Source of the DNA: Macrostomum lignano
Lineage: Eukaryota
Direction: 5' to 3'
Length of the DNA stretch: 64,000 nucleotides
Assembly (NCBI GenBank): GCA_002269645.1
Contig: NIVC01001199.1
Coordinates: 124,001-188,000, forward strand
Every line of letters starts with the position of its first letter. Within the stretch, counting starts at the first letter, position 1. Below the pieces are notes generated by a model that had not been told where the DNA came from, searched no databases, and saw nothing but the letters and a program-made list of their open reading frames with translations. Shown here one piece after another: positions 366 to 58,339 of this stretch. The position numbers were made by a program, and so were the translations under genes.

Positions 366-3300
366 TCAAATGCTAAGCATCGGAGTCAAGCCAACCAGTC
401 GCATAGCGGAGGCCAGCACCGACCGGGTCGAGTTAAACAGCGCCAATCGGCCAATCGCGCCGCTATCTTTGGCGCATGTCAGCACGGGTAGGACACGCAG
501 ACAGGCATTTGCGCGCGACACCAATCTATTAGTGTAGGCCACTAATACGCATGGCTCGTACGTTAGAAAGGCTTCTAGAGCCGTGTCCGGATAGGCTAGC
601 AATTGCTCGGCCAGTTCGTTAGCCGCTGTAGCAGCCTTGGGCCCAACTAAATTCAATGCCAGATCGATACTACTGCCATCGTCTGGGCTGCTGATACCGG
701 CTTTGGCTGCTTTGCTGGCGAGGCTGCACAGCCTGCAAGGGTTTGGGGCTGGTTGCTTTTTTCTCTCACCAGAGGTCTTCAGGGGCTGATGCTACTGCTA
801 TCCCTTGGGTCTTCAGGGCTGATCCTACTGCTATCCCCCGGGTCTTCAGGGGCTGATGCTACTGCTATCCCTTGGGTCTTCAGGGCTGATCCTACTGCTA
901 TCCCCCGGGTCTTCAGGGGCTGATGCTACTGCTATCCCCCGGGTCTTCAGGGGCTGATGCTACTGCTATCCCTTGGGTCTTCAGGGGCTGATGCTACTGC
1001 TATCCCCCGGGTCTTCAGGGGCTGATGCTACTGCTATCCCCCGGGTCTTCAGGGCTGATCCTACTGCTATCCCCCGGGTCTTCAGGGGCTGATGCTACTG
1101 CTATCCCCCGGGTCTTCAGGGGCTGATGCTACTGCTATCCCCCGGGTCTTCAGGGGCTGATGCTACTGCTATCCCCCGGGTCTTCAGGGGCTGATGCTAC
1201 TGCTATCCCTTGGGTCTTCAGGGGCTGTTGTTACTGTCTGTTCACCGGGTCTTCAGGGGCTGATGCTACTGCTATCCCCCGGGTCTTCAGGGGCTGATGC
1301 TACTGCTATCCAATGGGTGTTCAGGGACCCTGCTACATATCTACCCGGCCCATGACCGTCAGGTAAGCTACTTCTGTTCTCTCAGTCATTTAATCGCACC
1401 TGGCATGGCAGTACTGAGCGCCAACAGCCGAATTATCGCTGTCCCAGCTGAACTTAACCGGCTGCAGCCGGCGCACTCGCATCATCTCCATGGCAACGAC
1501 GCTGGCGGCTAGCCTATCAGCAATCGATGAAGCGTCGGACCCGTCGATTCGTCGATTTGGCGACGCTTTCGATCTTTCGAGCATCCTGGCTTGGCCAACG
1601 TCGAGTATGTCGCGGAGCAGTACCACTCCGCCGGAGCCGCTCCGCCTGGTGCTCATGCCTTCCACTCGGCCGAATTCGACGTGCATCGGCCAGGGTGACG
1701 GATTGGCCAGGTCCGGACGGCCCAGGGCGGTCAGGGCGCGGCCAAGACGGTCAAAGTGCAGCCGCTGGGCCGATTCGACAACGTAGTGGGCGCGTCCACA
1801 GCCCAGATTGTCGGCTCTGCATTGGATAGAATAGATTTTCTAAGGCTATTGAAACTTTTCTAAGGCTTAGACTTTTCAAATACTCGTAGCTATTAAATAC
1901 GGGACGCTTCTAAATACGCTCGTTTTCTCTTATTCTCTTATTATTTCATCAGAATAGAAAAAGGAGCCGATAAGGTAGGGAGAGGGGAAGGAGACAGAGA
2001 GGAGGGAGAAGAGCTGGGAGGAGAAGAGAGGGGGAAGGGAAGGAGAGGGGGGAGAAGAGAGGGGAAGGGAAGGAGAGGGGGAGGGAGAAGAGAGGGGAAG
2101 GGAAGGAGAGGGGGAGGGAGAAGAGAGGGGAAGGGAAGGAGGGGGAGGGAGAAGAGAGGGGAGGGGAAGGAGGGGGAGGGAGAAGAGAGGGGAGGGAAGG
2201 AGAGGGGGAGGGAGAAGAGAGGGGAAGGGAAGGAGGGGGAGGGAGAAGAGAGGGGAAGGGAAGGAGGGGAGGGAGAAGAGAGGGGAAGGGAAGGAGGGGA
2301 GGGAGAAGAGAGGGGAAGGGAAGGAGGGGGAGGGAGAAGAGAGGGGAAGGGAAGGAGGGGGAGGAGAAGAGAGGGGAGGGGAAGGAGGGGGAGGGAGAAG
2401 AGAGGGGAAGGGAAGGAGGGGGAGGGAGAAGAGAGGGGAGGGAAGGAGAGGGGGAGGGAGAAGAGAGGGGAAGGGAAGGAGGGGGAGGGAGAAGAGAGGG
2501 GAAGGGAAGGAGGGGGAGGGAGAAGAGAGGGGAAGGGAAGGAGGGGGAGGGAGAAGAGAGGGGAAGGGAAGGAGGGGGAGGGAGAAGAGAGGGGAGGGAA
2601 GGAGAGGGGAGGGAGAAGAGAGGGAAGGGAAGGAGGGGGAGGGAGAAGAGAGGGAAGGGAAGGAGGGGGAGGGAGAAGAGAGGGGAGGGAAGGAGGGGGA
2701 GGGAGAAGAGAGGGGAAGGGAAGGAGGGGGAGGGAGAAGAGAGGGGAGGGAAGGAGAGGGGGAGGGAGAAGAGAGGGGAAGGGAAGGAGGGGGAGGGAGA
2801 AGAGAGGGGAAGGGAAGGAGAGGGGGAGGGAGAAGAGAGGGGAAGGGAAGGAGGGGGAGGGAGAAGAGAGGGGAGGGAAGGAGAGAGACTGAAAGAGCTG
2901 GAGGCGATAAGGTAGAAGGGAGATAAGAAGAATTTAGCGAGTCTTACTCATGTGCAGCAATAACAATTTACTAGAAAGCTATCACAACACAAACAAGCGC
3001 ACCTATCCAGAGCAGCCAGCAGGTCTCTGCCAAAGTACAGCGAGCTGCCGTCCCGCTTCTGCACCACAGCCTCGTCGTCGGCGCTGTCGGCAAGCCGGAG
3101 CAGTTTGGCTCCGTCCGGCGCCGCAGCTAACAGGCCGCGCCGATCTAGCAGAGCCAGCAGTTTGCCAGTCTGCTTGGCATAATCGGACTCGAACTCGAGC
3201 CGGTCAAAGCTGACTGACAGGCGCCGATAGCAGGCGTCCAGTTCGGCCAGTGAGTGCCGTTTGGCTAAGCGCCAAAGCCGCATAGCTTGCGGCTCGCCGG

Positions 3301-4681
3301 ATTCTAAACGGGCGTAGGCGGATTCGACCGCTTCGGCTGGCAGTTCGGTGCCGGCCCTGGCGTACACGGACTGCATGTGCTGCACCGCCAGCCGGCTGAC
3401 CTGCTCTGACACCTGCGCGTGCGGGACAGGCGACACTATCTGCGACATCAGCTAAAGGCTCCAGTCTCCGCCATCACCTAAGGGTTCCAGTCTCCGACAT
3501 CAGCTAAGGGTTCCAGTCTTTCCGACATCACTTAAGGGTTCCAGTCTCTCCGACATCACCTAAGGGTTCCAGTCTCTCCGACATCACCTAAGGGTTCCAG
3601 TCTCCGACATCAGCTAAGGGTTCCAGTCTCCGACATCAGCTAAGGGTTCCAGTCTCCGACATCAACTAAGGGTTCCAGTCTCCGACATCAGCTAAGGGTT
3701 CCAGTCTCCGACATCAACTAAGGGTTCCAGTCTCCGACATCAGCTACGAATTTCATTCTCCGACATCAGCTAAGGTTTTCAGTCTCCGGCATCACCTAAG
3801 GGTTTGAGTCTCCGACATCAGCTAAAGGTTCCAGTCTCCGACATCAGCTAATGGCTCCAGTCTCCGACATCACCTAAGGGTTCCAGTCTCCGACATCACC
3901 TAAGGGTTCCAGTCTCCGACATCAGCTAAGGTTTTCAGTCTCCGACATCAGCTAAGGGTTCCAGTCTCCGACATCAGCTAAGGTGTTCAGTCTCCGACAT
4001 CACCTAAGGGTTCCAGTCTCCGACATCAGCTAAGGTTTTCAGTCTCCGACATCAGCTAAGGGTTCCAGTCTCCGACATCAGCTAAGGTTTTCAGTCTCCG
4101 ACATCAGTTAAGGGTTCCAGTCTCCGACATCAGTTAAGGGTTCCAGTCTCCGACATCAGTTAAGGGTTCCAGTCTCCGACATCAGTTAAGGGTTCCAGTC
4201 TCCGACATCAGCTAAGGGTTCCAGTCTCCGACATCAATCAGGAATCAGTCTCCAGCATTATTTCAAGAATAATGCTATTCCATAAGGCCCCAATATCCAG
4301 CAGGCTTACCTGTTGATCATCCTCCGACCCAAGCAGCTCAGGCCGTCCAAAGCTCTCCATCCCAGCCAGCAGCAGGGCGAACTGCCTGCCCCAATCGCCC
4401 AGATAATTAATCCCAATAACCCGATGCCCGAATGCTCTATTAATCTGCACCACAAAATTGCCCAACACCGTGGCTCGAAGATGACCAGCGTGCAAAGGTT
4501 TGGCCACATTGACCGAGCTGAAATCCACAAACACTGGCGCCGATTGCGGCCCCGGCTGGGGCAGCTGGCATCGCGCACCGCGCCATTCAACGCTGACAGG
4601 CTGGGCCAGGCCGTAGGCGGGTCCGGCTCGGATTACAGCCGAAACCGCATCGCTGACGCGCTTGGCTACCGGCGCCGACAT
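366..4681 (-). CDS. RARS2: Arginyl-tRNA synthetase, mitochondrial type (4 exons: 4681-4310, 3412-3003, 1816-1400, 732-366; ~521 aa)
   Basis: Class I HIGH region FSSVNVAKPLHAGHLRATVLGN, INYLGDWGRQF, KRDGSSLYFGRDL, KMSKS-equivalent GMSTRR, QYCHARLCS and C-terminal RLALFNSTRSVLASAMRLVGLTP. All introns are GT-AG with matching phases (0,2,2). The joined CDS is 1566 nt with no stop. The exon 2 acceptor could alternatively lie 12 nt further in. Confidence 0.93.
773..1312. repeat. 33-34-bp minisatellite in RARS2 intron 3
   Basis: GGGTCTTCAGGGGCTGATGCTACTGCTATCCCCC, ~15 copies. Confidence 0.95.
1985..2890. repeat. ~30-bp pure-purine minisatellite in RARS2 intron 2
   Basis: GGGAGAAGAGAGGGGAAGGGAAGGAGGGGA-type units. 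Confidence 0.95.
3445..4236. repeat. 26-bp minisatellite in RARS2 intron 1
   Basis: CAGCTAAGGGTTCCAGTCTCCGACAT, ~30 copies. Confidence 0.95.
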
Positions 4682-7915: not shown

Positions 7916-10900
7916 TCAGACATAGTCTCCTCCGCGAGTCCCGGCTATTACAGTCTGAATGCTAACCCCGGACGCGTCGCTATCCATTGTCATGTAGAGC
8001 CGGCCCTCCTCATTGTCGCTATTATTGCCATCTTCATCACTAGAATCCGCCGCATAATTATTGTTGTCCTCTTCATCTTCAGCATCATCTACGGATAGTA
8101 AGCGAAGATTAACACCGGAGCGCAGCAGTCTGGGCGTCCGCTCGGCCGATTCTAAATCGCTGCTCCGCACGCTAGCCGAATCGTCGCCTAAATCGTCGAG
8201 ATTTCCGTCGTCGTCCTCTTTAGTGTCTACTCTGCAGGCAACAGCAACAGCGACAGGAGCCTCTGAGTCGGCTACAACGCAGTCGGTGATGGTCTCGCAC
8301 GATGACGATGTTGAATAATTGCCTACAGACGACCGGTTGTTAAGATCGCCCCTAGCAACTGGCACAGACGGACCTGTTGAATTGGACATTGCAGCCGCAA
8401 TGCACGCGAAATTAACTCGCGGCCTGGGCAAAATATCGTCGAACGGACGCCGGCGACCGGCTTCCTCATCCGGGAACAGGTAGTAGCAGTAGCCGAACAG
8501 GTCCGACAGGGGCCGGTTGGCGGGAGCGGGCGCCGCGCCGGAGCGCCGGTAGCCGCCGCCGGAGCTGCTTAACTCAGACAGAGATGAGGAAGCCACCGAT
8601 GCTAAAGATAAGGATTCGGGCGTTGCTATGGGCGCCTGGCCGTTCGAATACGGCATACTGGACGCTGACGGTGGCAAGCCGAAATTTCGAAGCACGGAGG
8701 CTGGCACAGTGTGCGAATGCGGCATCATCGACAGCAGGGCGGAGGCCGAAGCTGCCGCCGGTTCGGCTGTCGAGCTGATGATCATTTTGTCACCTGCGGC
8801 GGCGCCGTTGGAATCGATCGGCGCACCCATAATCGACGAAGAAAGAAGGTCGCTATCGATATCCGACTCTACCGACATTTGAGACGGCGACGAAGCCAAA
8901 TTGTTTTGCTGAACAATTGAATAATTTCTTTTGTCCTCTGTCTCGCTGCCGGCCCCGCAGTCTGTCTGAATCACTAGGCGTCGTTCGATCGAGGTCGCAG
9001 CAGCAGCGAAACTTTGCGCCGCTGGACGAAGTGTGCCTGGAGAGCCGCGCGGCGACGGCTGCAATCTGTCGTAGTCGGAGAGGACGGCGGCCAAGGCGAA
9101 CTGGGCGTAGCCAAGCGAGTGATCGCGCAGCATAGACGGAGAGGAGAGTATCTGTAGAAATGGGTAAACGGCATGAGCAACTATGACAGTCTCTTCAGGC
9201 TAAAAAGCCTCGTCACCTAATTAGTATTGAATAATTCTAACTTGCCTCGTCAAAATCGGTGCCGTCGGCTTTCAAAGCGTGAAACACCGGCTTGCCGTCG
9301 GTATTTCGAGCACGGACTACGTGCAGCACCCGGCCTGGCAACTGCAGAGCCGGATACGTCCTCGGCGACGCCGAGTCGGATGACGACATTGCGGCGTTGG
9401 TGTCGGCCAACTCGTCTCCAGGCGACGCATTCAGGGTATCCTCTGACTCTTGCAGTTGCTTGTGACGGCTATTGCAACAGCAGAGAGACAAACGGCGGCT
9501 GGCTGAAATTTATAGGAGAAAACCGCCCACTTCACTCCCTGATGACTCGGACACACCCACCTCCCACCCTGGAGACTCGGACGCACCCACCTCACCCAAC
9601 GACTCGGACACGCCCACCTCACTCCCTGATGACTCGGACACACCCACCTCCCACCCTGGAGACTCGGACACGCCCACCTCACTCCCTGATGACTCGGACA
9701 CGCCCACCTCACTCCCTGATGACTCGGACACGCCCACCTCACTCCCTGATGACTCGGACACGCCCACCTCACTCCCTGATGACTCGGACACGCCCACCTC
9801 ACTCCCTGATGACTCGGACACGCCCACCTCACTCCCTGATGACTCGGACACGCCCACCTCCCTCCCTGATGACTCGGACACGCCCACCTCACTCCCTGAT
9901 GACTCGGACACGCCCACCTCACTCCCTGATGACTCGGACACGCCCACCTCCCTCCCTGATGACTCGGACACGCCCACCTTCCTCCCTGATGACTCGGACA
10001 CGCCCAACTCACTCCCTGATCAGTGAGATCCTTACCAAGCCAATGTCCGCCAATGACGCTCCACCGGTGCGCTCGGCAGCCATTCAGAAGCCGCACCATT
10101 CTACGACGCAGCGTCGCAACCTGCGCCAAACCCAGTCGAGCGACGGCATCCCGTCCGATGACAACGGCGGTAGAGAACCGTCTGGCTAGCGTGGCCGCCT
10201 CCCGGCCGAGTAAACCACCGGGCGGCGCCAGAGCCGTTACGCGCGATCGGCTGGCCCAAGCCTCGCCGCGCGCCAGCGCCATCAAAGTGAGTATGACCGC
10301 GGCGCCGCCGCCAACGCCATGACCGGTGAGCATCACTTCAACGAAGCTCGACTCAACGTTTACATCGCCGGCAGCAGCCGCCGCAGTCTCCAGTACGCGA
10401 TGGCGCGCCAATTCGGCGCCTAGTTGAATAGCGGCGCCAATTGACCCCGCGTGGCCCAGCCACTCGGCGCCGCCGTCAACGCCGGCCGGAAGCGGTATCG
10501 GCGCAACTCCGCTCTCCAGCTCGCTCATTGAAGGCATCCTCAGCGTACTACTAGCGCTAGTAGTAGTAGACGAAGCGACAGTAACGCTTGGCGCTACAAC
10601 TACAAAAATATTCCGCGTGAAAGCGTCGTAGCCGGCAAAACAATTGCGGCTGGCGTAGGTTAACCGAAAGCGGGCGTCGCTAACGCCTTGTCGATTTAAA
10701 CTGTGCCGAACTGCGCCGGTGACGCTACGGTTGCCATGACAACAACAGGCTTCGGCAACCAGTATTAGCTTGGCGCAGTACAAAGCCAATTCAATTTCGA
10801 TTTGTCGGTCGGATTGGCCAAGTTGAAGAATCGCGTGGCCGAGTAGATAGGCCGGCCGGACATGTAGTCCAGCACGCGCTTGGAGCCCTCCTAGGTTCGG

Positions 10901-13900
10901 ACGGAGGATTAAAAGTACAAACAAATTACTCATAATACCTGGCGACAAAGCAATACTAAATTTTTTAGAAAATCTTACTTAGACTTCATTTTCAAGCCTC
11001 TTATCCTTGGCGCAATAAAAGTTTGACGTCTGAGAGCAACTATGAAGGCTATATAAAAACCAAAACTTAGGCCCTACAAAAGCCACGACAAAGGCCCTAT
11101 AAAAGCAACAGAAGGGTCCTAAAAGCTCACGCTAAGCTCCGATCGTTGCCGAAGGCGCTGTTGCCTTCGCAGCAGCACCAGGCCGGCGGCCAGGTCGGAG
11201 GCCACCAGATTCAGATCCGCGAACAGTGGCGTCAGTCGCAGCGCCGCGTCGGTCAGGCCGAACGGCAACGACGACGAAGTCGATCGTGAGGTAAACGGTG
11301 GGCAGCACAGCTGACGACGGCGTATGGACGTCGGCGGGGGCGGTGGAAGCGGTGGCAACTGGCCAGGCAGCTTCTTGTTGCTGTCGCAGCTGCCAAACAT
11401 TGCAGGCGTGCGGACGGGCGGGGTGATTGTGAGAACACTGATGACATGGATTGTAGCAACCACTGTTCTATCTTGTTTCTGTCTGTCTGTCTGTCTGTCT
11501 GTTTGTATGTCAGCAGAAGACTTTCTAATCGCACATTTCTCTCAACTCTGCATAGGAAATGACAATAGTTTCTTGAAATAGACTAACTTATCCCCGTCGG
11601 CGTCAATCAGGTTGTCATGGTAACAGCTGCGACTATCGATGAGCTTCTTTCCGCGGCGGTCATGTTTTCGCGCGCCCAACCGACGCCAGCGGCAAGAGTC
11701 GCAGCCGAGCCGATGCAGCAGGCAGATCAGAGCGCCGGAAATCAGCAGAGCCACTGTCCAATCGATTGCAGATACGGCTGACAGGAGAAGAGAAAAAACA
11801 GCGGGCGGTTGATTCACTTACTTACAGTAGAACCATACGCGTTTGAATGATAATTTGGAGGTCATATCAAATCTTGTCAAAGATATAATATTTCACGATT
11901 TTTTTCAATCTGAACCACCCCTCCTCTCATTCTCAATATTACCCTCTTCTCACTCTCAGTGTCTATCTCACCCTCTTCTCACTCTCAGTATCCATCTCAC
12001 CTTCTTCTCACTCTCAATGTCTATCTTACTGTCTGCTCACTCTCAGTGTCTATCTCATCCTCTTATGAGTGTCAATCTCAGCCTCTTCTCACTCTCCATC
12101 TCACCCTCTTCTCCCTCTCGGTGTCTATCTCACCCTCTTCTCACTCTCAGTATTCATCTCACCCTCTTCTCACTCTCAGTATTCATTTCACCCTCTTCTC
12201 ACTCTCAGTGTCTATCTCACCTTCTTCTCTCTCGGTGTCTATCTCACCCTCTTCTCACTCTCAATGTCCATCTCACCCTCTTCTCACTCTCAGTGTCTAT
12301 CTCACCCTCTTCTCACTCTCAGTGTCTATCTCACCCTCTTCTCACTCTCAGTGTCTATCTCACCCTCTTCTCACTCTCAGTGTCTATCTCACCCTCTTCT
12401 CACTCTCAGTGTCCATCTCACCCTCTTCTCACTCTCAGTGTCCATCTCACCCTCTTCTCACTCTCAGTGTCTATCTCACCCTCTTCTCACTCTCAGTGTC
12501 TATCTCACCCTCTTCTCACTCTCAGTGTCCATCTCACCCTATTCTCACTCTCAGTGTCTATCTCACCCTCTTCTCACTCTCAGTGTCTATCTCACCCTCT
12601 TCTCACTCTCAGTGTCTATCTCACCCTCTTCTCACTCTCAGTGTCTATCTCACCCTCTTCTCACTCTCAGTGTCCATCTCACCCTCTTCTCACTCTCAGT
12701 GTCCATCTCACCCTCTTCTCACTCTCAGTGTCTATCTCACCCTCTTCTCACTCTCAGTGTCTATCTCACCCTCTTCTCACTCTCAGTGTCCATCTCACCC
12801 TCTTCTCACTCTCAGTGTCTATCTCACCCTCTTCTCACTCTCAGTGTCTATCTCACCCTCTTCTCACTCTCAGTGTCTATCTCACCCTCTTCTCACTCTC
12901 AGTGTCTATCTCACCCTCTTCTCACTCTCAGTGTCTATCTCACCCTCTTCTCACTCTCAGTGTCTATCTCACCCTCTTCTCACTCTCAGTGTCTATCTCA
13001 CCCTCTTCTCACTCTCGGTGTCTATCTCACCCTCTTCTCACTCTCAGTGTCTATCTCACCCTCTTCTCACTCTCAGTGTCTATCTCACCCTCTTCTCACT
13101 CTCAGTGTCTATCTCACCCTCTTCTCACTCTCAGTGTCCATCTCACCCTCTTCTCACTCTCAGTGTCTATCTCACCCTCTTCTCACTCTCGGTGTCTATC
13201 TCACCCTCTTCTCACTCTCAGTGTCTCTCTCATCCTCTTCTCACTCTCAGTGTCTATCTCACCCTCTTCTCACTCTCAGTGTCCATCTCACCCTCTTCTC
13301 ACTCTCAGTGTCCATCTCACCCTCTTCTCACTCTCAGTGTCCATCTCACCCTCTTCTCACTCTCAGTGTCCATCTCACCCTCTTCTCACTCTCAGTGTCT
13401 ATCTCACCCTCTTCTCACTCTCAGTGTCTATCTCACCCTCTTCTCACTCTCAGTGTCTATCTCACCCTCTTCTCACTCTCAGTGTCTATCTCACCCTCTT
13501 CTCACTCTCAGTGTCTATCTCACCCTCTTCTCACTCTCAGTGTCTCTCTCACCCTCTTCTCACTCTCAGTGTCTATCTCACCCTCTTCTCACTCTCAGTG
13601 TCTATCTCACCCTCTTCTCACTCTCAGTGTCCATCTCACCCTCTTCTCACTCTCAGTGTCTATCTCACCCTCTTCTCACTCTCAGTGTCTCTCTCATCCT
13701 CTTCTCACTCTCAGTGTCTATCTCATCCTCTTCTCACTCTCAGTGTCTCTCTCATCCTCTTCTCACTCTCAGTGTCTCTCTCACCCTCTTCTCACTCTCA
13801 GTGTCCATCTCACCCTCTTCTCACTCTCAGTGTCCATCTCACCCTCTTCTCACTCTCAGTGTCTCTCTCATCCTCTTCTCACTCTCAGTGTCTATCTCAT

Positions 13901-19829: not shown

Positions 19830-20320
19830 CTCGCAAGATACACACCAGGAGACAGAACGAGAGACACGGTGAGACACAAAAAGAGACACGCAGGAAATAC
19901 AAGAGACACACAGAAAAGACACAAGTAGACACACAGAAGACACAATAAGAAACACAAGAGACACAGAGGAGACACAAGAAGAGACACAAGAGACACAAGA
20001 GGAGACACAAGAAGAGACACAAGAGACACAAGAAGAGACACAAGAGACACGCAGGAGACAGAAGAGACACACGGGAGACAGAAGACACATGGGAGACAGA
20101 AGAGACACACGGGAGACAGAAGATACATGGGAGACAGAAGAGACACACGGGAGACAGAAGACACATGGGAGACAGAAGAGACACACGGGAGACAGAAGAC
20201 ACATGGGAGACAGAAGAGACACACGGGAGACAGAAGAGACACACGGGAGACAGAAGACACATGGGAGACAGAAGAGACACACGGGAGACAGAAGAGACAC
20301 ACGGGAGACAGAAGAGACAC
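19830..20320. repeat. 18/20-bp minisatellite
   Basis: GGGAGACAGAAGAGACACAC alternating with GGGAGACAGAAGACACAT. Confidence 0.9.
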
Positions 20321-34303: not shown

Positions 34304-41008
<6,705 letters not shown>

Positions 41009-42759
41009 GAATGTGGGAGCTACATCCTAAAATCCGAAACAGACATACATTATTTACATTTACAGTCATACGATATTTAGCTTTTTGCAATCCTTTGTGC
41101 AATAGAAGCGATCTATTTTTGCGGCTCTATAAAAAAGCATATTGATTTTATGGTTATTTAGCTAAACAAAATATTTGAGGCAGCCAAAATTTTTCTGATT
41201 ATTTTGCTGTCACAAATCTTTACAAATATAAGTGTAAATATATTTGCTTTTATGCTATAATTCGTCCTTTTCGTCATAATATACGGGTATTTAATGTACT
41301 GAATATATCTGATATTGATCACTAATTGCAATACGAGGACTGCACTGTAGTAACAATACTGTAGTTAACTATATGTAGTATATACATAATTTTACTGGCT
41401 GTTGTCCTTGGTGCAATATTATAAATTTGAAAGAAAGATTAAATATTTTGATTTTAAATGTTATCTTGATATCTATATTTTTACGACTATTTACGGAAGT
41501 TTAGTTGGTTTTTTAATAATGCTTTGTTATAATATTTTAGTCTCAGTAGGTGTACTTACTTATCAGTCTTTTCTTTTATTTATTCGTTTGTTTATTATAT
41601 TTAGTCGGATGAACATATTTTAGCTGCATTCACGTACCTACCCAACTAGTTTTTATACATCTACTTTATATGTGCATCGTTACGAAGTTTAGTTTCTTGC
41701 ATTAGCTAATCTGTTTGTTATAATAAATGTTGTACACCGGTACATTTACTATCTGTTGTGTATGAGTGTGCATATGCATGTGTGTGACACTGAAGCTTGG
41801 GCTATACTCGTATGAATATTACTGTCTATGGTATAAATACACGTGACGGCCTAGAGAGACGGCCATGCCCTCTGAGCTTTAGTTTCATCAGACCGCGCGC
41901 TATAGAAGATATAACCCTCTCGGCTTCGCGATATATAACACTATCATTGAATTTTTTAAACAAAACACAAAACAGTGAGTTATTTTGTCTCATATGTATA
42001 CCATTTATATACCATTTATTGTATTCTCTGGTGGTGCAGGCACAAAATTTGGCTATATATTAATCTGAAAAATATTAAATAAATATTATTTATGCGGGCG
42101 CATCTCTGGCTTTGCGGTAACTATATGGTCGGAATAATGAGCAATTCTCGATTTTTTTCTGCTATTTTTTTACTGACGGAACACAAATATTTTATTATCA
42201 ATATTATTATGCGATATTAACTTCATCTCCTGCTCAGACAGGTGTCACACTGTATTTTAAGTGTAGCATATTAGACACTCAAATTAGAGTAAATTTACTC
42301 AAAGTAGCAACTACAAATCGACAGAGATAGAGATAGTCATTCATCTGTTCACAAATCGAAGTGAATAATAATAATTATTATTGTATACTATTAGCGTCGA
42401 TTAACAACTTTAGAATTGGAACAAAAAAGTGGTTGATAGAAAAATTAAAGTAGAAGAAGCGTTTGGACTTTACTTTTTTTAGCCAGAGTTCGACAAATTC
42501 GGTTCGGTATTGAGAGGAATTGTTTCTGCAACTGCAACACTTCCGGAAGCTGACGCAGGTTAATAGCTCGAATAGTTAGCTGATATAAAATTCAGATAAT
42601 TTTTTAAGGACAAAAAATACTCGTACATTTACATGCATTTATGAACAAATACATTAAGGCCGTAAGCGGATATTGTTGTTTGGTTGATTACGATTCTGAA
42701 ATTGTCGTCTGACAGTTGTCCTCAGATGCACTCAAAAGATTACGGTCGACTTGTATTTT

Positions 42760-43260
42760 TCGACTCTGTGGGGACTGTCTGCAGATTCTGTGGCAACTGT
42801 CTGTCTGTACAGATTCTGTGACAAATGTCTGTCTGTGCAGATTCTGTGGCAACTGTCTCTCTGTACAGATTCTGTGACAAATGTCTGTCTGTGCAGATTC
42901 TGTGGCAATTGTCTGTCTGTACAGATTCTGTGGCAACTGTCTGTCTGTACAGATTCTGTGGCAACTGTCTGTGTGTACAGATTCTGTGGCAACTGTCTGT
43001 CTGTGCAGATTCTGTGACAACTGTCTCTCTGTACAGATTCTGTGGCAACTGTCTGTCTGTACAGATTCTGTGACAAATGTCTGTCTGTACAGATTCTGTG
43101 GCAACTGTCTGTCTGTACAGATTCTGTGACAAATGTCTGTCTGTACAGATTCTGTGACAAATGTCTGTCTGTAAAGATTCTGTGACAAATGTCTGTCTGT
43201 ACAGATTCTGTGGAAACTGTCACATTCTGTGGCAACTGTCTGTCTACAGATTCTGTGGGG
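42760..43260. repeat. 28-bp minisatellite
   Basis: CTGTCTGTCTGTACAGATTCTGTGGCAA. Confidence 0.93.
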
Positions 43261-43412
43261 ACTGACACCATTAAAAAACGTGTCCAGTATTTTTCGACCT
43301 GTTTCTTCTGTCCTGTAGATTTTCAGCGCAGATGGTGAGAAACATAAAAATTTAAACGAAAGCCAAAAATGAAGAATGCAATTTGTGGAATTCGGTCGTT
43401 CTACTCCCATCA

Positions 43413-43853
43413 TTAGTCGCTGTCGCTGTTGCACAGGCCGGCTCCCACGGCATGCACCGGTGACAGGCCACACTTGCGAAAGGCGTCCTTGGCGCATGCT
43501 AGGCAGCTTCGTTGGGTCTGGCAGGACATCAAGGTGCCCGACAGGCAGCCCAGCTGCCGGCTGTCGCTTGTCGCAACCGACCGAAAAATTGCCGCAGAAA
43601 CGGAGCTCAGAGCCGAACCGGCGGATTTGGAGCGGCAGACGGCGGCAGCGAACTCCGAGACCTGACGGAGGCTGCAGGTGCGGAGGCCACGACTGACGCA
43701 TTCCAGACAGTCCCTGCCGCCGCTTTGCTGCAGCTTGCAGCCAGTTAAAACCGGCTTCAGGCAGCCCAGCTGACCAGGCAGATTCGACTGGCTGACGGAT
43801 GCAGCCAGGGGGAGCCTGGATAGCAGCTGAAGCAGAGCCAGCACTGCGACCAT
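43413..43853 (-). CDS. Putative secreted cysteine-rich protein with two tandem 6-Cys repeats (146 aa, single exon)
   Basis: ATG at 43853, hydrophobic N-terminus MVAVLALLQLLSRLPLAAS, 12 Cys spaced C-x7-C-x9-C-x2-C-x7-C-x12-C and C-x7-C-x5-C-x2-C-x7-C-x12-C, each repeat starting QLGCL. GC-rich island between two satellites; AG acceptor 2 nt upstream of the ATG. Confidence 0.7.
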   Translation of the reverse strand: MVAVLALLQLLSRLPLAASVSQSNLPGQLGCLKPVLTGCKLQQSGGRDCLECVSRGLRTCSLRQVSEFAAAVCRSKSAGSALSSVSAAIFRSVATSDSRQLGCLSGTLMSCQTQRSCLACAKDAFRKCGLSPVHAVGAGLCNSDSD

Positions 43854-43904
43854 CACTGTTGAAGTGCGGCGACACAGCTGGGATGAGACTGCTGCGGCCG
43901 ATTG

Positions 43905-44510
43905 CAGCCGGGTGATTCACAAAGACAACTATCCGTAATTCTAGCAACCATCCGTGATTCACAAAGACAACTATCCGTAATTCTAGCAACCATCCGTGAT
44001 TCACAAAGACAACTATCCGTAATTCTAGCAACCATCCGTGATTCACAAAGACAACTATCCGTAATTCTAGCAACCATCCGTGATTCACAAAAATATCCAA
44101 AATTCACACAACCATCCGTGATTCACAAAGACAACTATCCGTAATTCTAGCAACCATCCGTGATTCACACAAATATCCAAAATTCACACAACCATCCGTG
44201 ATTCACACAACTATCCGAAATTCACACAATCATTCATGATTCACACAATCATCCGTCATTCACACAACTATCCGAAATTTACACAATCATTCATGATTCA
44301 CACAATAATTCGTGATTGACACAATTATCCGTGATTCACATCATTCGTGATTCACACAATCATTCGTGATTCACACAATAATTCGTGCTTCACACAACCA
44401 TCCATAAAAAACCCAATCATCTATAATTCACACAATCATCCGTAATTCACACAATCATCTATAATTCTCACAATCATCCGTAATTCACACAATCATCCGT
44501 GATTTACACG
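43905..44510. repeat. 42-bp minisatellite decaying into a ~20-bp subunit
   Basis: GTGATTCACAAAGACAACTATCCGTAATTCTAGCAACCATCC, then GTGATTCACACAATCATCC-like units. Confidence 0.9.
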
Positions 44511-45033
44511 ATTAATAATCTGCATTTTCTGAAAATCCAAGTGCAGAATTAAACTCAAAAAGCTTACCCTTCATAGCGTTGCCAACAGTTTCACACATTT
44601 CTTGTATTGTTTAATTTGCTCTGCAGAAGTTTTCACTGTAACAAAATTAAGAAAGTGAATAATAATCAATAGCTTAGTATCGATCGATGCCTTTCGATTA
44701 AGTCAAGAATTGAGTCTTTATCAAAGCACTCCCACATCAGATATTGTTACGAAAGTTGTAACAATGTTTCTGCAAATTTTACCATAAACTATGGCAAGAA
44801 ACGAGGTTTTATTAAAAAAGGCTTATAGTTATATTATAGTTAGCATAAGCGTGTTGAAACGGACCCACACACTGCAATTGTCTATGGCCGACTTCAATAA
44901 ATAAAACTCGTTTGCATATAAGTATTTTGTTTGACCCAATTAGTTAGGCCATTTGACACACTCAGAACCTGACCAGCTGGATCCAAGAAAGAAAAAAAGA
45001 AGAAAAGAAAGACGGACGGAGAGGTAGTTAAGG

Positions 45034-48920: not shown

Positions 48921-51512
48921 CTTCCGCTTCAGCATTCCGGGCTTCTGCACTATCCGCAAGGACCGTAAAACCGCCCGCTGCGACCCGAACGTTAAAGGCG
49001 GCGGCCTGCTCTTCTTTATCCGGCAAGTCATTCCGTTCAATAAACCCCGAGGATGGTCTGGCGGAACCACCGAAGGCTGCAGAATTTCGATCAGCACCTC
49101 GGCCAGACAAAAACTTGTCATCTCCAACATCTGCAGCACAAGCTCAGTGCCTGGTCGACTGGTGCAACTCCGTGGACTACCGCATCCTGAACTCAGGGGA
49201 ACACACTTAAGTTGACAGGCGCACCGGACGGGCTAGTGCTCCCGATCTCACCATCGCTAGTCAATCAGTGGCCGACCTCTTTAAATGGCAACCGCTCACC
49301 GAGCTCGGCTCCGATCACCAACCCATCCTGGTGATTGTCCCGGAATCCCGTGAAACCCTGAGCACTGCGCCTCGCTTCAGCTGGTCTTGGAAGAAAGCGA
49401 ACTGGACTGCTTACCAGACCCTGCTCTCCGAGGACGCCGACCGCCTCAATGGCGGCTCCATTAAGAAACAGATTGCCAGGCTCTGCTCGGGCATGCTTAA
49501 AGCAGCCAAATCTGCTATCCCGCTAAAAAAAGTCTCTGCCAAAAACAAGCCATACTGGGATGAAGAACTTACTGAACTTCGCGACACTCGGAACCGGCTT
49601 TGGGAATCTGGCGCCCATCCTGGTGAGTGGCTCGAAAAAAGTCACGAACTGTCCAAACTCTGTACCGAAAAGAAAGCCGAATTCTGGAAGGAGTACATCA
49701 ATAAAATGTCCGACTCTGCCGACCCAAAACAAGTCTGGAGGACTGTCAAGTGCCTCAGCAACGGCAAACAACAAGCTCCTCCCAACGAATCTCTCGTTGT
49801 TGATGGTCGAGAACTGCGCACGGACAAGGAAAAGGCTAACGCCTTTGGCCGCTATTGCGAAAACATCAGCACTCTGAAACACTCGGCGGTGGACCGCAAG
49901 GTCAAAGTGGCCACGTCCCGTCGCCTGGCCCACTACTCCACCGACGACAACCTTTAATGCCGTGACTTCACCCCTGGTGAGCTGAAACGGGCCATTGGCA
50001 AACTTGACCCAAGCAAAAAATGTGGGCCCGACGAAATCGAAGCTGCCTTCTTCATCCACCTGCCGGACTCTTGGATGACGGCCTGGCTGGCCGTCTTCAA
50101 CCGTTGCTGGCGTACCGGACACTTCCCTGGAGTCTGGAAAAAGGCCGTTATCGTCCCCCTGCTAAAGGACGGAAAGGACCCCAAAGACCGCGGTAGCTAC
50201 AGGCCTGTCAGCCTCACCTCCATCTGCGGGAAGATCCTCGAACGGCTTATCCTCGATCGCCTCTTTCGCTGGCTCGAGCTCCACCACAACATCATTCAGC
50301 CCTGCCAAGCCGGTTTTCAACGTAGTCGCGGCTATGAAGAGCAAATCACCCGCCCCGTTCAGTCTATTCAAGATGAATGGGAGAAACACCCGCACTTGAA
50401 AACTGTGGCCGTCCTCATCGACTGCTCTCGCGCCTTCGACCGTGTTTGCGCGCTCGCCTTATTGGTCGCATGATGGACGAAGGTTCACCAGCTTTCTCGA
50501 AGGCAGGCAGATCGCTGTGCGGGTCGGCTCCTCGCTTGGGAAATGGCGCAGACGGAGGGCGCCGTCAGCTCGCCTGCCCTCTTCCTCATCGATGTTAATA
50601 AGTGGTCCGGTCACACCGTGCCTCTCGTTGACTACAGTGGCATTGCAGACGATCTCGCCCTCTGGAGCACGGGCCGGAACCTCCCGGAAATCCAGGCTCG
50701 CCTCCAATCCGCCCTGCAGCTCGTCGAGTAATGGGCCGCTCATCTGCGTATCGACATCAACCCTTCTAAAACTGAGGGATGCCTCTTCTCTCGTGACAGA
50801 TCTGACCGTCAACGCAACCTCAGCCTCACCCTCCGGGGCCAACAGATTCCTTTCAAGCAGGAGATTAAGTTTCTCGGAATCTGGATTGACCAATGTCTGC
50901 AATTCGAAAAGCAAACTGACTCCGTCCGGGAAAGAATGCTTCGCAGAGCTGCCATTCTTCGTGCCCTAGCCCACCGTGAATGGGGCTGGGATCGCAAGCT
51001 GCTGCTGCGAGTCTACCGGGCTCTTGTCGAATCCATCGTGTGGCACGCCGCCGCGGCCTGGACGCCCTGGCTATCTGCGACCCCAGCCCAGCGTGAGGCC
51101 CTCCGGGTTGTCACTGGTTTCCCCCGCTCGACACCGGTAGAGGTCATCTACCTCTTGAAAGAGGTACCTCTTGAATTTTCTCTTCTATTCTCCCCCCGCT
51201 TATTTATTATCAAGAGGAGGCCCTTTAGGACCTCCTAGTCTCGCAGGTCCGCGCCGGGCACTGTCCTGCATCGATCTACTACCGCAACCGCACTGGCATT
51301 GAGGTCGGGGGCAACTGCCGTCTTTGCGCGGAAGAGGTCGATCGGTACCACCTTCTCAACTGCCCGGCCCTGGACGTCCAACGCCGTACTCACGGCATTA
51401 CCGAAATGTGTCAACTCGCTCGCGCAGACGTAGTGGCGCTTCTCCTTGGGGCCATCGGTTGGTGTCCCCTTTAGGAGAGGCTCACCGCATACAACAACAA
51501 CAACAACAACAC
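48917..51512 (+). mobile_element. Decayed, 5'-truncated non-LTR retrotransposon (APE endonuclease + RT + C-terminal CCHC, I/Jockey-group-like) with (CAA)n tail
   Basis: FSIPGFCTIRKDR...GGGLLFFIR and PDLT...LGSDHQPI (APE); WKKAVIVPLLKDGKD...SYRPVSLTSICGKILER, DCSRAFDRV, IADDLALW (RT); CRLCAEEVDRYHLLNCPAL (~51315-51375); (ACA)n at ~51490-51510. Multiple frameshifts, stops and deletions. Confidence 0.9.
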
Positions 51513-53920: not shown

Positions 53921-57655
<3,735 letters not shown>

Positions 57656-58339
57656 CTGGGGGTGTTGCATAAAGGCGTGTATGATGGTGGAGTGCGCAAA
57701 GCGAAAGTATTCCGGGTATTCCGGGAAATCGATAAATGACGGAAATGTTAAAAACACGTTGCCCAGTGAACTTTGCATACTTGCCAGGTAAAATTTGATG
57801 CTGAAAAGTCTTTTTAATCCCTAATAAAACTTCAAAAACACAGTTCTATACTTAAAGAGCTGCTTTTATTCTTCAAAATGAAAGCACTTGATTGACAAAG
57901 TCCCCCTTTCTTAACTCAACACAGCCTTCACGATGCCTTATGGAGTTTTACCTCGAAAAAATCATTGGACTTCTTTTATTGCACTTGACTTTGCTCCTTT
58001 CTATAGCCCTTGCGAATCTTACGAGTTACTTGTGACTATTCTCTATACATGTAGCTATACGCTTGTGACATGACAGATTCAAAAGTACCACGTGGGGGGA
58101 TGACGATTGATTTTGTCTGGCCAAGTAACCGAATTAAGTCTGCTGGAGAAGAAGCTGCTCCGCGGTCTGCGCAGCCACTGGCCATCCATGGGAAAGGCCG
58201 AGTGCTTGGCCAAACTTCAAATTGTCCACCGAATTTGCATTCTGCCAGTTTAACCCGGGGTTCCGCTGAAGCCCGGCGTCCCCTGAGACTTGAATTGATC
58301 AACCAATCATTCATGATACAGTTTCTCACGCACTTCAGC

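Follow-up and report, generated by a model that had tools for sequence, protein, structure and literature searches.

In the mating pheromones of the ciliate Euplotes (such as the Er family), which are small and secreted, a stretch of about 40 residues carries six cysteines whose three disulfides stabilise an up-down-up three-helix bundle. Attractin, which the mollusc Aplysia secretes as a water-borne pheromone for use outside the body, is helical, has about 58 residues and likewise carries six cysteines in three disulfides. The saposin-like proteins (SAPLIP; saposins, NK-lysin, amoebapores) are secreted helical proteins with three disulfides that are often cationic and membrane-active and sometimes occur in tandem. 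Here we describe Mlig010537, a gene of the free-living flatworm Macrostomum lignano located in a 64,000-nucleotide stretch of contig NIVC01001199.1 (assembly GCA_002269645.1, positions 124,001 to 188,000 of the forward strand), which is referred to as the window. With a probability of roughly 0.6, we regard Mlig010537 as a genuine transcribed gene without relatives that encodes a secreted, disulfide-stabilised helical protein of two six-cysteine modules with a binding function outside the cell. The architecture predicted for these modules appears closest to the three-helix pheromones of Euplotes, with attractin, saposin-like proteins and plant alpha-hairpinins more distant.

A predicted Mlig010537 module shares the gross architecture of the Er family, which is an analogy and not a membership: no sequence similarity was detected, no Foldseek match to an Er chain in the PDB was obtained at E<=10, and Mlig010537 comes from an animal, carries two tandem modules per chain and has no obvious processing sites. 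Attractin differs in that it has two helices, which form a hairpin, and a cysteine framework of another kind; its conserved motif is absent from Mlig010537. No Euplotes-type or attractin-type chain was present among the sequence or fold matches in the PDB, and the cysteine spacing of the modules (7, 9/5, 2, 7, 12) differs from both frameworks. Saposin-like proteins contain four or five helices in about 80 residues and show another cysteine pattern; the Pfam saposin models were not matched at E<=10 and no PDB match was found. The only compact Foldseek alignment was obtained with the alpha-hairpinin/vicilin-buried N-terminal peptide of Jug r 2 (9q1l_C), a disulfide-stapled helical hairpin. It comprised 34 columns with a root-mean-square deviation of 1.0, template modelling scores of 0.59/0.80, E 9.3 and a probability of 0.25, and was not significant. 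Whereas plant alpha-hairpinins have two helices and four cysteines in a CX3C-Xn-CX3C arrangement, a Mlig010537 module has six cysteines and a CX2C motif. In none of these comparisons (Pfam, PDB, pheromones) could Mlig010537 be assigned to one of the families.

The open reading frame (ORF) at 43413-43853 of the minus strand translates into 146 amino acids followed by a TAA stop, exactly as written in a preliminary description of the locus, which had also reported two six-cysteine repeats. Both repeats, here called module 1 and module 2 (Table 1), are present with the spacings given there. Their cysteines occupy residues 31/39/49/52/60/73 and 103/111/117/120/128/141 of the 146-residue ORF. Alignment of the N-terminal with the C-terminal half gave a Smith-Waterman score of 90, which was reached by 0/5000 shuffled sequences (28.0 ± 5.6, maximum 54). 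When all cysteines were recoded as alanine, the score was still 60 compared with 28.5 ± 5.5 in shuffles, again with 0/5000 reaching it. In a codon alignment the modules are 41% identical at the protein and 55.6% at the DNA level, and identity was lowest at third codon positions (27/42, 23/42 and 20/42 for positions 1, 2 and 3). The rates of nonsynonymous and synonymous substitution between the modules were dN 0.55 and dS 1.27 (Nei-Gojobori), the latter being saturated. The similarity between the halves spills slightly over the module borders, both upstream of QLGC (SVSQSN.. versus SVATSD..) and downstream (C-RSKS versus C-NSDS); the duplication, which took place within one exon, therefore took in almost all of the mature coding segment. 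The modules carry the sequence signatures of an old intragenic tandem duplication, after which constraint at the protein level has acted on both copies. Although DNA identity elsewhere in the modules is only about 56%, their initial 15 nt (CAGCTGGGCTGCCTG, encoding QLGCL; 43758-43772 and 43542-43556) are identical including synonymous sites, which could be due to codon bias, a small conversion tract or constraint at the nucleotide level.

Codon usage was evaluated with a table of 1,881 codons taken from other ORFs of the window, most of them with Pfam-supported domains. Scored with it, the annotated frame reached a log-likelihood of +34 bits, compared with no more than +4 bits for any of the other five frames. 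The GC content at third codon positions of exon 2 (GC3) is 0.74, which is above GC1 and GC2 as in other genes of the window. Together with the third-position divergence and dN < dS between the modules, this frame-specific usage supports the selection at the protein level that had been suggested for the ORF. RNA-seq and transcript assemblies (StringTie/TACO and a de novo transcriptome) were the sole basis of the annotation of the assembly, from which novel transcripts below 0.5 reads per kilobase per million mapped reads were dropped unless they overlapped the earlier de novo transcriptome (PMC5730564). Mlig010537 thus shows what is expected of a transcribed protein-coding gene: a transcript-based model, splice sites of the canonical type and a coding signature that is specific to the frame. 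The preliminary description had named the combined lack of transcript or peptide evidence and of homologues as an argument against the gene; homologues were indeed not found, but the gene model derives from transcripts.

The sole database match of the 146-residue ORF is a 157-residue 'hypothetical protein BOX15_Mlig010537g1' (also g2; PAA53550.1, PAA70906.1, A0A267DW57), which begins 11 codons further upstream in a separate 5' exon. The product is longer by 11 residues because the deposited model has two coding exons, and, given the deposited start in the upstream exon, the 146-residue ORF represents exon 2 of the 157-residue product. GenBank coordinates were carried over to the window, which is 100% identical to NIVC01001199.1 over 33413-54598, and the deposited gene range corresponds to 44598..43413 (minus strand). 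Exon 1 encodes MCETVGNAMK and the first base of Val11. Three in-frame ATGs are present in the gene, two in exon 1 (Met1 and Met9) and Met12, and each of them keeps the signal-like core. The intron has the donor G/GTAAG at 44567 and the acceptor ttcaaCAG/TG, with the AG at 43857-43856, two bases 5' of the ATG. In M. lignano, cis-splice sites follow the motifs GT[G/A]AG (donor) and CAG (acceptor), and acceptors of spliced-leader trans-splicing follow [T/C]TNCAG (PMC8629364). Both the GTAAG donor and the CAG acceptor of Mlig010537 match the cis motifs, and the acceptor context caaCAG does not match the trans motif and is annotated as cis. The AG before the ATG, for which either cis- or trans-splicing had been considered, coincides with the annotated cis acceptor and is therefore a genuine splice acceptor; according to the transcript-derived annotation, the trans-splicing alternative did not hold. 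Two matches to the trans motif upstream of exon 1, TTACAG and CTGCAG, are candidate sites of spliced-leader addition. The two-exon Mlig010537 is a real gene that is already in GenBank as a hypothetical protein, and the gene model itself is not new.

A second genomic copy of the gene encoding an identical protein is located on NIVC01003067.1. It is base-for-base identical to the window over 42649-44809, including two minisatellites of a usually hypervariable kind, one downstream of the gene and one in its intron, and the flanks of the two copies differ by 0.2-0.6%. The M. lignano genome is partly polyploid (PMC5730564). The identity of the copies suggests a very recent duplicate, gene conversion or a retained haplotype of this partly (hidden-)polyploid genome.

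In a hydropathy scan of the whole product, a hydrophobic core (VMVAVLALLQLL, residues 9-23 of the 157-residue protein) with a mean Kyte-Doolittle value of 2.5 was found, in agreement with the signal-peptide-like start noted earlier, followed by a c-region SRLPLAAS/VSQ. From the -3/-1 rule, signal cleavage would be expected after AAS or SVS. The scan revealed no further hydrophobic segment, and the C-terminus (NSDSD) is hydrophilic, so that the product is probably secreted by the classical pathway. A membrane or glycosylphosphatidylinositol anchor was discarded, as a C-terminal hydrophobic segment is absent. The predicted mature protein has about 126 residues and 12.9 kDa, an isoelectric point (pI) of 8.9 and a net charge of about +6 at pH 7; Trp and Tyr are missing from it, and Ser (20), Leu, Ala, Gly and Cys are abundant. 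Between the modules lies a Ser/Ala-rich basic linker, the end of which (SV.TSDSR) aligns with the SVSQSNLPG stretch preceding module 1 and which was modelled as disordered in the full-length AlphaFold2 model, with a predicted local distance difference test (pLDDT) value below 50. Proteolytic cleavage of this linker had been proposed, but no support was found in its sequence: dibasic and R-x-K/R-R convertase sites are absent from its 26 residues, and a release of the modules by such or furin-type cleavage was discarded.

Each module is predicted, with moderate model confidence, to form a three-helix unit. A single-module AlphaFold2 model reached a pLDDT of 74.9 and a predicted template modelling score of 0.55, with helices at residues 2-17, 21-35 and 42-52, and in the full-length model, prediction was best for module 2 (pLDDT 64-75). 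The models are helical, as had been anticipated for the domains in the preliminary description, although as predictions. Two independent sequence features agree with the three-helix model: alignment columns 19-22, where the modules have their only indel, overlap the predicted loop between helix 1 and helix 2 (residues 18-20), and the invariant non-cysteine residues L5, L8 and L12 are spaced i/i+3/i+7 on one face of helix 1. Three disulfides probably lock each module. Judged from residue positions only, in an antiparallel register of the helices, the pairings would be C1-C5, C2-C3 and C4-C6.

Relatives of Mlig010537 were searched for at the level of domains, folds, proteins and genomic sequence. 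No Pfam-A family was matched at E<=10 by the 146-residue ORF, the 157-residue product or either module, which includes saposin B, PSI, ShK, EGF, Kazal, WAP and insulin, and neither an enzyme nor any other domain was detected in the product. Among PDB sequences, 0 matches at E<=10 were obtained with phmmer (protein) or hmmsearch (two-module profile). The best Foldseek hits of the AlphaFold2 models in the PDB, a comparison that had been proposed before, had E 6.2 (full-length) and 6.0 (module), thus none better than E=6 and none significant; as the models are of low to moderate confidence, this fold test is weak. A word-indexed search of 5.8 billion clustered proteins returned only the protein itself, and the module alignment as query gave no candidates. 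An exhaustive HMMER pass over 1.84 billion representatives returned the protein itself and one translated tandem repeat, which aligned in seven weak stretches and was rejected as spurious. In metagenome contigs of the Joint Genome Institute, 76 matches to degenerate patterns were obtained, of which 0 were confirmed by tblastn. The search for paralogues by tblastn and cysteine pattern that had been envisaged for the locus was carried out in the window and the sister locus and yielded no true paralogue; one other match to the cysteine pattern, at 19921-20049, is a translated repeat array. No relative was found within the M. lignano proteome as contained in the protein databases searched. The name Mlig010537 was found neither in full-text literature nor in supplements of M. 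lignano papers, the large expression tables among them being covered in part. The initial failure to recognise the family is thus matched by its absence from Pfam, PDB and protein clusters. A lineage-restricted family is the best reading of these sequence comparisons. The family and its cysteine framework are undescribed, and its fold, judged from the models, is probably undescribed as well.

Several observations weigh against the reading of Mlig010537 as a secreted two-module protein. The case for transcription comes from the way in which the annotation was made, and exact-sequence look-ups found the protein on two NCBI contigs only and in no independent transcript assemblies (the 146-residue version had no record). 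AATAAA is absent between the stop codon and the 28-bp array downstream of it. No homologue is at hand for a between-species test of selection, and the sister copy, being identical across the gene, gives no information on selection. Counted from the annotated Met1, the n-region of the signal peptide is long and without net charge. The full-length model, made without an alignment, is all-helical and poor (pLDDT 49), the single-module model rests on a two-row alignment in which the other module is the only extra row, and 'helix 1' of module 1 contains Pro and Gly.

What the data show is the exon-intron structure, the internal duplication, the coding signature and the lack of homologues; secretion, disulfide connectivity, the three-helix fold and all statements on the biological role of Mlig010537 are inferred. 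In the proposed mechanism, an N-terminal signal peptide of about 31-33 residues would direct the product to the endoplasmic reticulum and the secretory pathway, where three disulfides would form per module. A stable basic two-domain protein of about 12.9 kDa and pI ~8.9 would then be released, in which two three-helix modules of about 45 residues are joined by the flexible Ser/Ala-rich linker. This protein would act extracellularly as a non-enzymatic binding protein and would most likely belong to the secretion of a gland.

Among 76 prostate-limited transcripts of M. lignano, 31 have no BLAST match and 38/65 with an identified ORF encode a signal peptide (PMC5977470); many of the corresponding proteins (Mlig-pro1-76) are small and lack a BLAST match or domain. 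Mlig010537 would fit this class by its orphan status, small size and secretion signal, and as a seminal-fluid protein of the prostate gland cells, or as one made in the female tract or shell glands, it could have evolved fast enough under sexual selection to hide its homologues. However, it is not among the transcripts with a recorded in situ hybridisation (ISH) pattern and has no sequence relative in the M. lignano proteome. The complete table in which ISH primer pairs are assigned to transcripts (Table S11 of PMC7336406), by which ISH annotations from earlier work were transferred to this transcriptome, and with them presumably those of the prostate/seminal-fluid screen, does not list Mlig010537; therefore no ISH pattern is on record for it, and we consider a reproductive secretion rather unlikely. 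A role in defence, in which gland cells of the epidermis, pharynx or gut would release a cationic helical protein for binding to microbial surfaces, would agree with the net charge and pI of the mature protein, with a strongly amphipathic helix 2 of module 1 (hydrophobic moment 0.71) and with a predicted compact, cysteine-rich secreted form. Such a role is unlikely, given that no similarity to saposin-like or other antimicrobial families was found, that the gene is single and not part of a multigene family, that Trp and Tyr are missing and the charge density is only moderate, and, as a weak point, that the gene is absent from the supplements of a paper on the knockdown of intestine-enriched genes in M. 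lignano. By analogy to Euplotes pheromones or Aplysia attractin, each module or the tandem pair might also bind a receptor as a signalling ligand. In size, in having six cysteines per ~45 residues and in its predicted up-down-up helices, the protein corresponds to the architecture of these pheromones, but the different cysteine spacing, the missing sequence or fold match in the PDB (which we assume to hold such pheromones), the lack of dibasic sites for module release and the lack of paralogues or an allelic series make a pheromone improbable. The more specific proposal of a new Macrostomum-restricted fold family, built from paired three-helix modules with three disulfides each, that would serve as a social or sexual signal in this reciprocally mating hermaphrodite, convergent with the helical pheromones of ciliates and molluscs, is likewise doubtful; the signal could be either a contact or water-borne cue or an ejaculate component that manipulates the partner.

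A structural function in mucus, rhabdites, eggshell or adhesive would require intermolecular disulfides and possibly an O-glycosylated linker. It would be in line with the amino acid composition, the Ser-rich linker and a tandem-module build typical of matrix proteins, but the protein is very small with two modules only, no similar protein was found in the databases searched, the M. lignano proteome included, and the even number of cysteines per module favours pairing within the module, so that we give this function little credence. Finally, the ORF could have arisen by chance in a GC-rich, stop-poor transcribed island and been called coding by TransDecoder without giving rise to a functional protein. 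The lack of homologues in any database searched and of peptide evidence would be expected in that case, and several overlapping ORFs of 78-106 residues are indeed present on the opposite strand of the island; these were themselves dismissed as a real gene, because they contain stops and their codon-usage log-likelihood ratio does not exceed +4 bits. Against a chance origin stand the six cysteines kept between modules of 56% nucleotide identity, the third-position divergence, dN < dS and frame-specific codon usage, and a signal peptide placed exactly at the N-terminus, and we regard it as very improbable. The reading as a genuine gene for a secreted two-module binding protein is preferred.

Positions of the main features are compiled in Table 1.

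Table 1. Features of Mlig010537 and of its surroundings in window coordinates.
Feature	Position	Strand	Basis
Exon 1, coding part (31 nt; ATG TGT GAA ... AAG G)	44568..44598	-	GenBank product mapping
Intron (712 nt, GTAAG...CAG)	43856..44567	-	annotation and sequence
Exon 2, coding part (443 nt including TAA stop at 43413-43415)	43413..43855	-	annotation, ORF, codon usage
Signal peptide (predicted), exon-2 part	43794..43855	-	hydropathy scan
Module 1, QLGCLKPVLTGCKLQQSGGRDCLECVSRGLRTCSLRQVSEFAAAVC, C-7-C-9-C-2-C-7-C-12-C	43635..43772	-	repeat alignment; residues 28-73 of 146-residue ORF
Linker, RSKSAGSALSSVSAAIFRSVATSDSR (26 residues, Ser/Ala-rich, basic, pI ~11.7)	43557..43634	-	sequence, repeat alignment
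Module 2, QLGCLSGTLMSCQTQRSCLACAKDAFRKCGLSPVHAVGAGLC, C-7-C-5-C-2-C-7-C-12-C	43431..43556	-	repeat alignment; residues 100-141 of 146-residue ORF
5' leader with TTACAG (44641-44636) and CTGCAG (44626-44621)	44621..44641	-	match to [T/C]TNCAG
28-bp minisatellite (16 copies, ~190 nt after stop; bounds or lies within 3' untranslated region)	42775..43221	.	tandem-repeat scan
19/38/42/80-bp minisatellite, filling most of intron	43912-44509		tandem-repeat scan
Arginyl-tRNA synthetase exons (tRNA-synt_1d, DALR anticodon-binding)	369-4681	-	Pfam
Class-3-lipase-like ORF	9434-10978	-	
Coiled-coil-like ORFs, no Pfam match	35.2-40.3 kb	+	
LINE-type non-LTR (long terminal repeat) fragments: endonuclease-reverse transcriptase piece and RVT_1 piece	49211-51235	+	
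Rhodopsin-family G protein-coupled receptor (7tm_1, E=1e-26 and 2e-15), at least 2 exons	53924-55279, 57229-57747	-	

Repeats are found on all sides of the gene. In addition to the minisatellites in the intron and after the stop codon, a TAGA array lies upstream of Mlig010537. The density of minisatellites in the window is extraordinary, with 68 rows of the tandem-repeat scan (TRF) over 1-64000 and periods of mostly 14-42 bp. Many of them are strongly strand-skewed (GC skew up to ±0.7), yielding long spurious ORFs in all frames, and several are situated inside introns of real genes. Since tandem repeats make up 15% of the M. lignano genome (PMC5730564), the minisatellites around Mlig010537 are typical of it. 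The sister contig carries a 4,545-bp LTR retrotransposon (L001:12659-17203) with two 100%-identical LTRs of 187 nt and a Pol ORF of 1,219 amino acids (RVT_1, RNase H, integrase). At the same site in the window (41754-41940), ~1.5 kb downstream of the gene, a single 187-nt LTR copy is present, which is either a solo LTR from LTR-LTR recombination or a collapsed assembly.

The neighbouring genes are unrelated to Mlig010537 and the nearest same-strand upstream gene is ~9 kb away; an operon or cluster context was therefore rejected. The exons of the arginyl-tRNA synthetase are split by G/A-rich and 26-34-bp minisatellite arrays, and a pure CTA array of ~84 copies (40255-40509) directly follows the coiled-coil-like ORFs. 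The two LINE pieces are in different frames, and the element is therefore degraded by frameshifts. The sequence that separates the exons of the G protein-coupled receptor includes a microsatellite with 115 copies of ATAG (56642-57102) as well as a 22-bp minisatellite.

Mlig010537 offers a clean case of an orphan gene whose coding status is argued from internal duplication alone, because no other species offers a sequence for comparison. Flatworms have many lineage-specific secreted proteins that are still uncharacterised; taken alone, Mlig010537 is one more of them and has no bearing on a major question. Proof that it is a mating signal, an effector in seminal fluid or an antimicrobial of a new class, and only such proof, would make it much more valuable. 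As transgenesis, RNA interference and ISH are available in M. lignano, its role is quickly testable. If real and secreted, Mlig010537 would extend the known disulfide-rich secreted proteins by a cysteine framework not described before and probably also by a new helical fold of small size.

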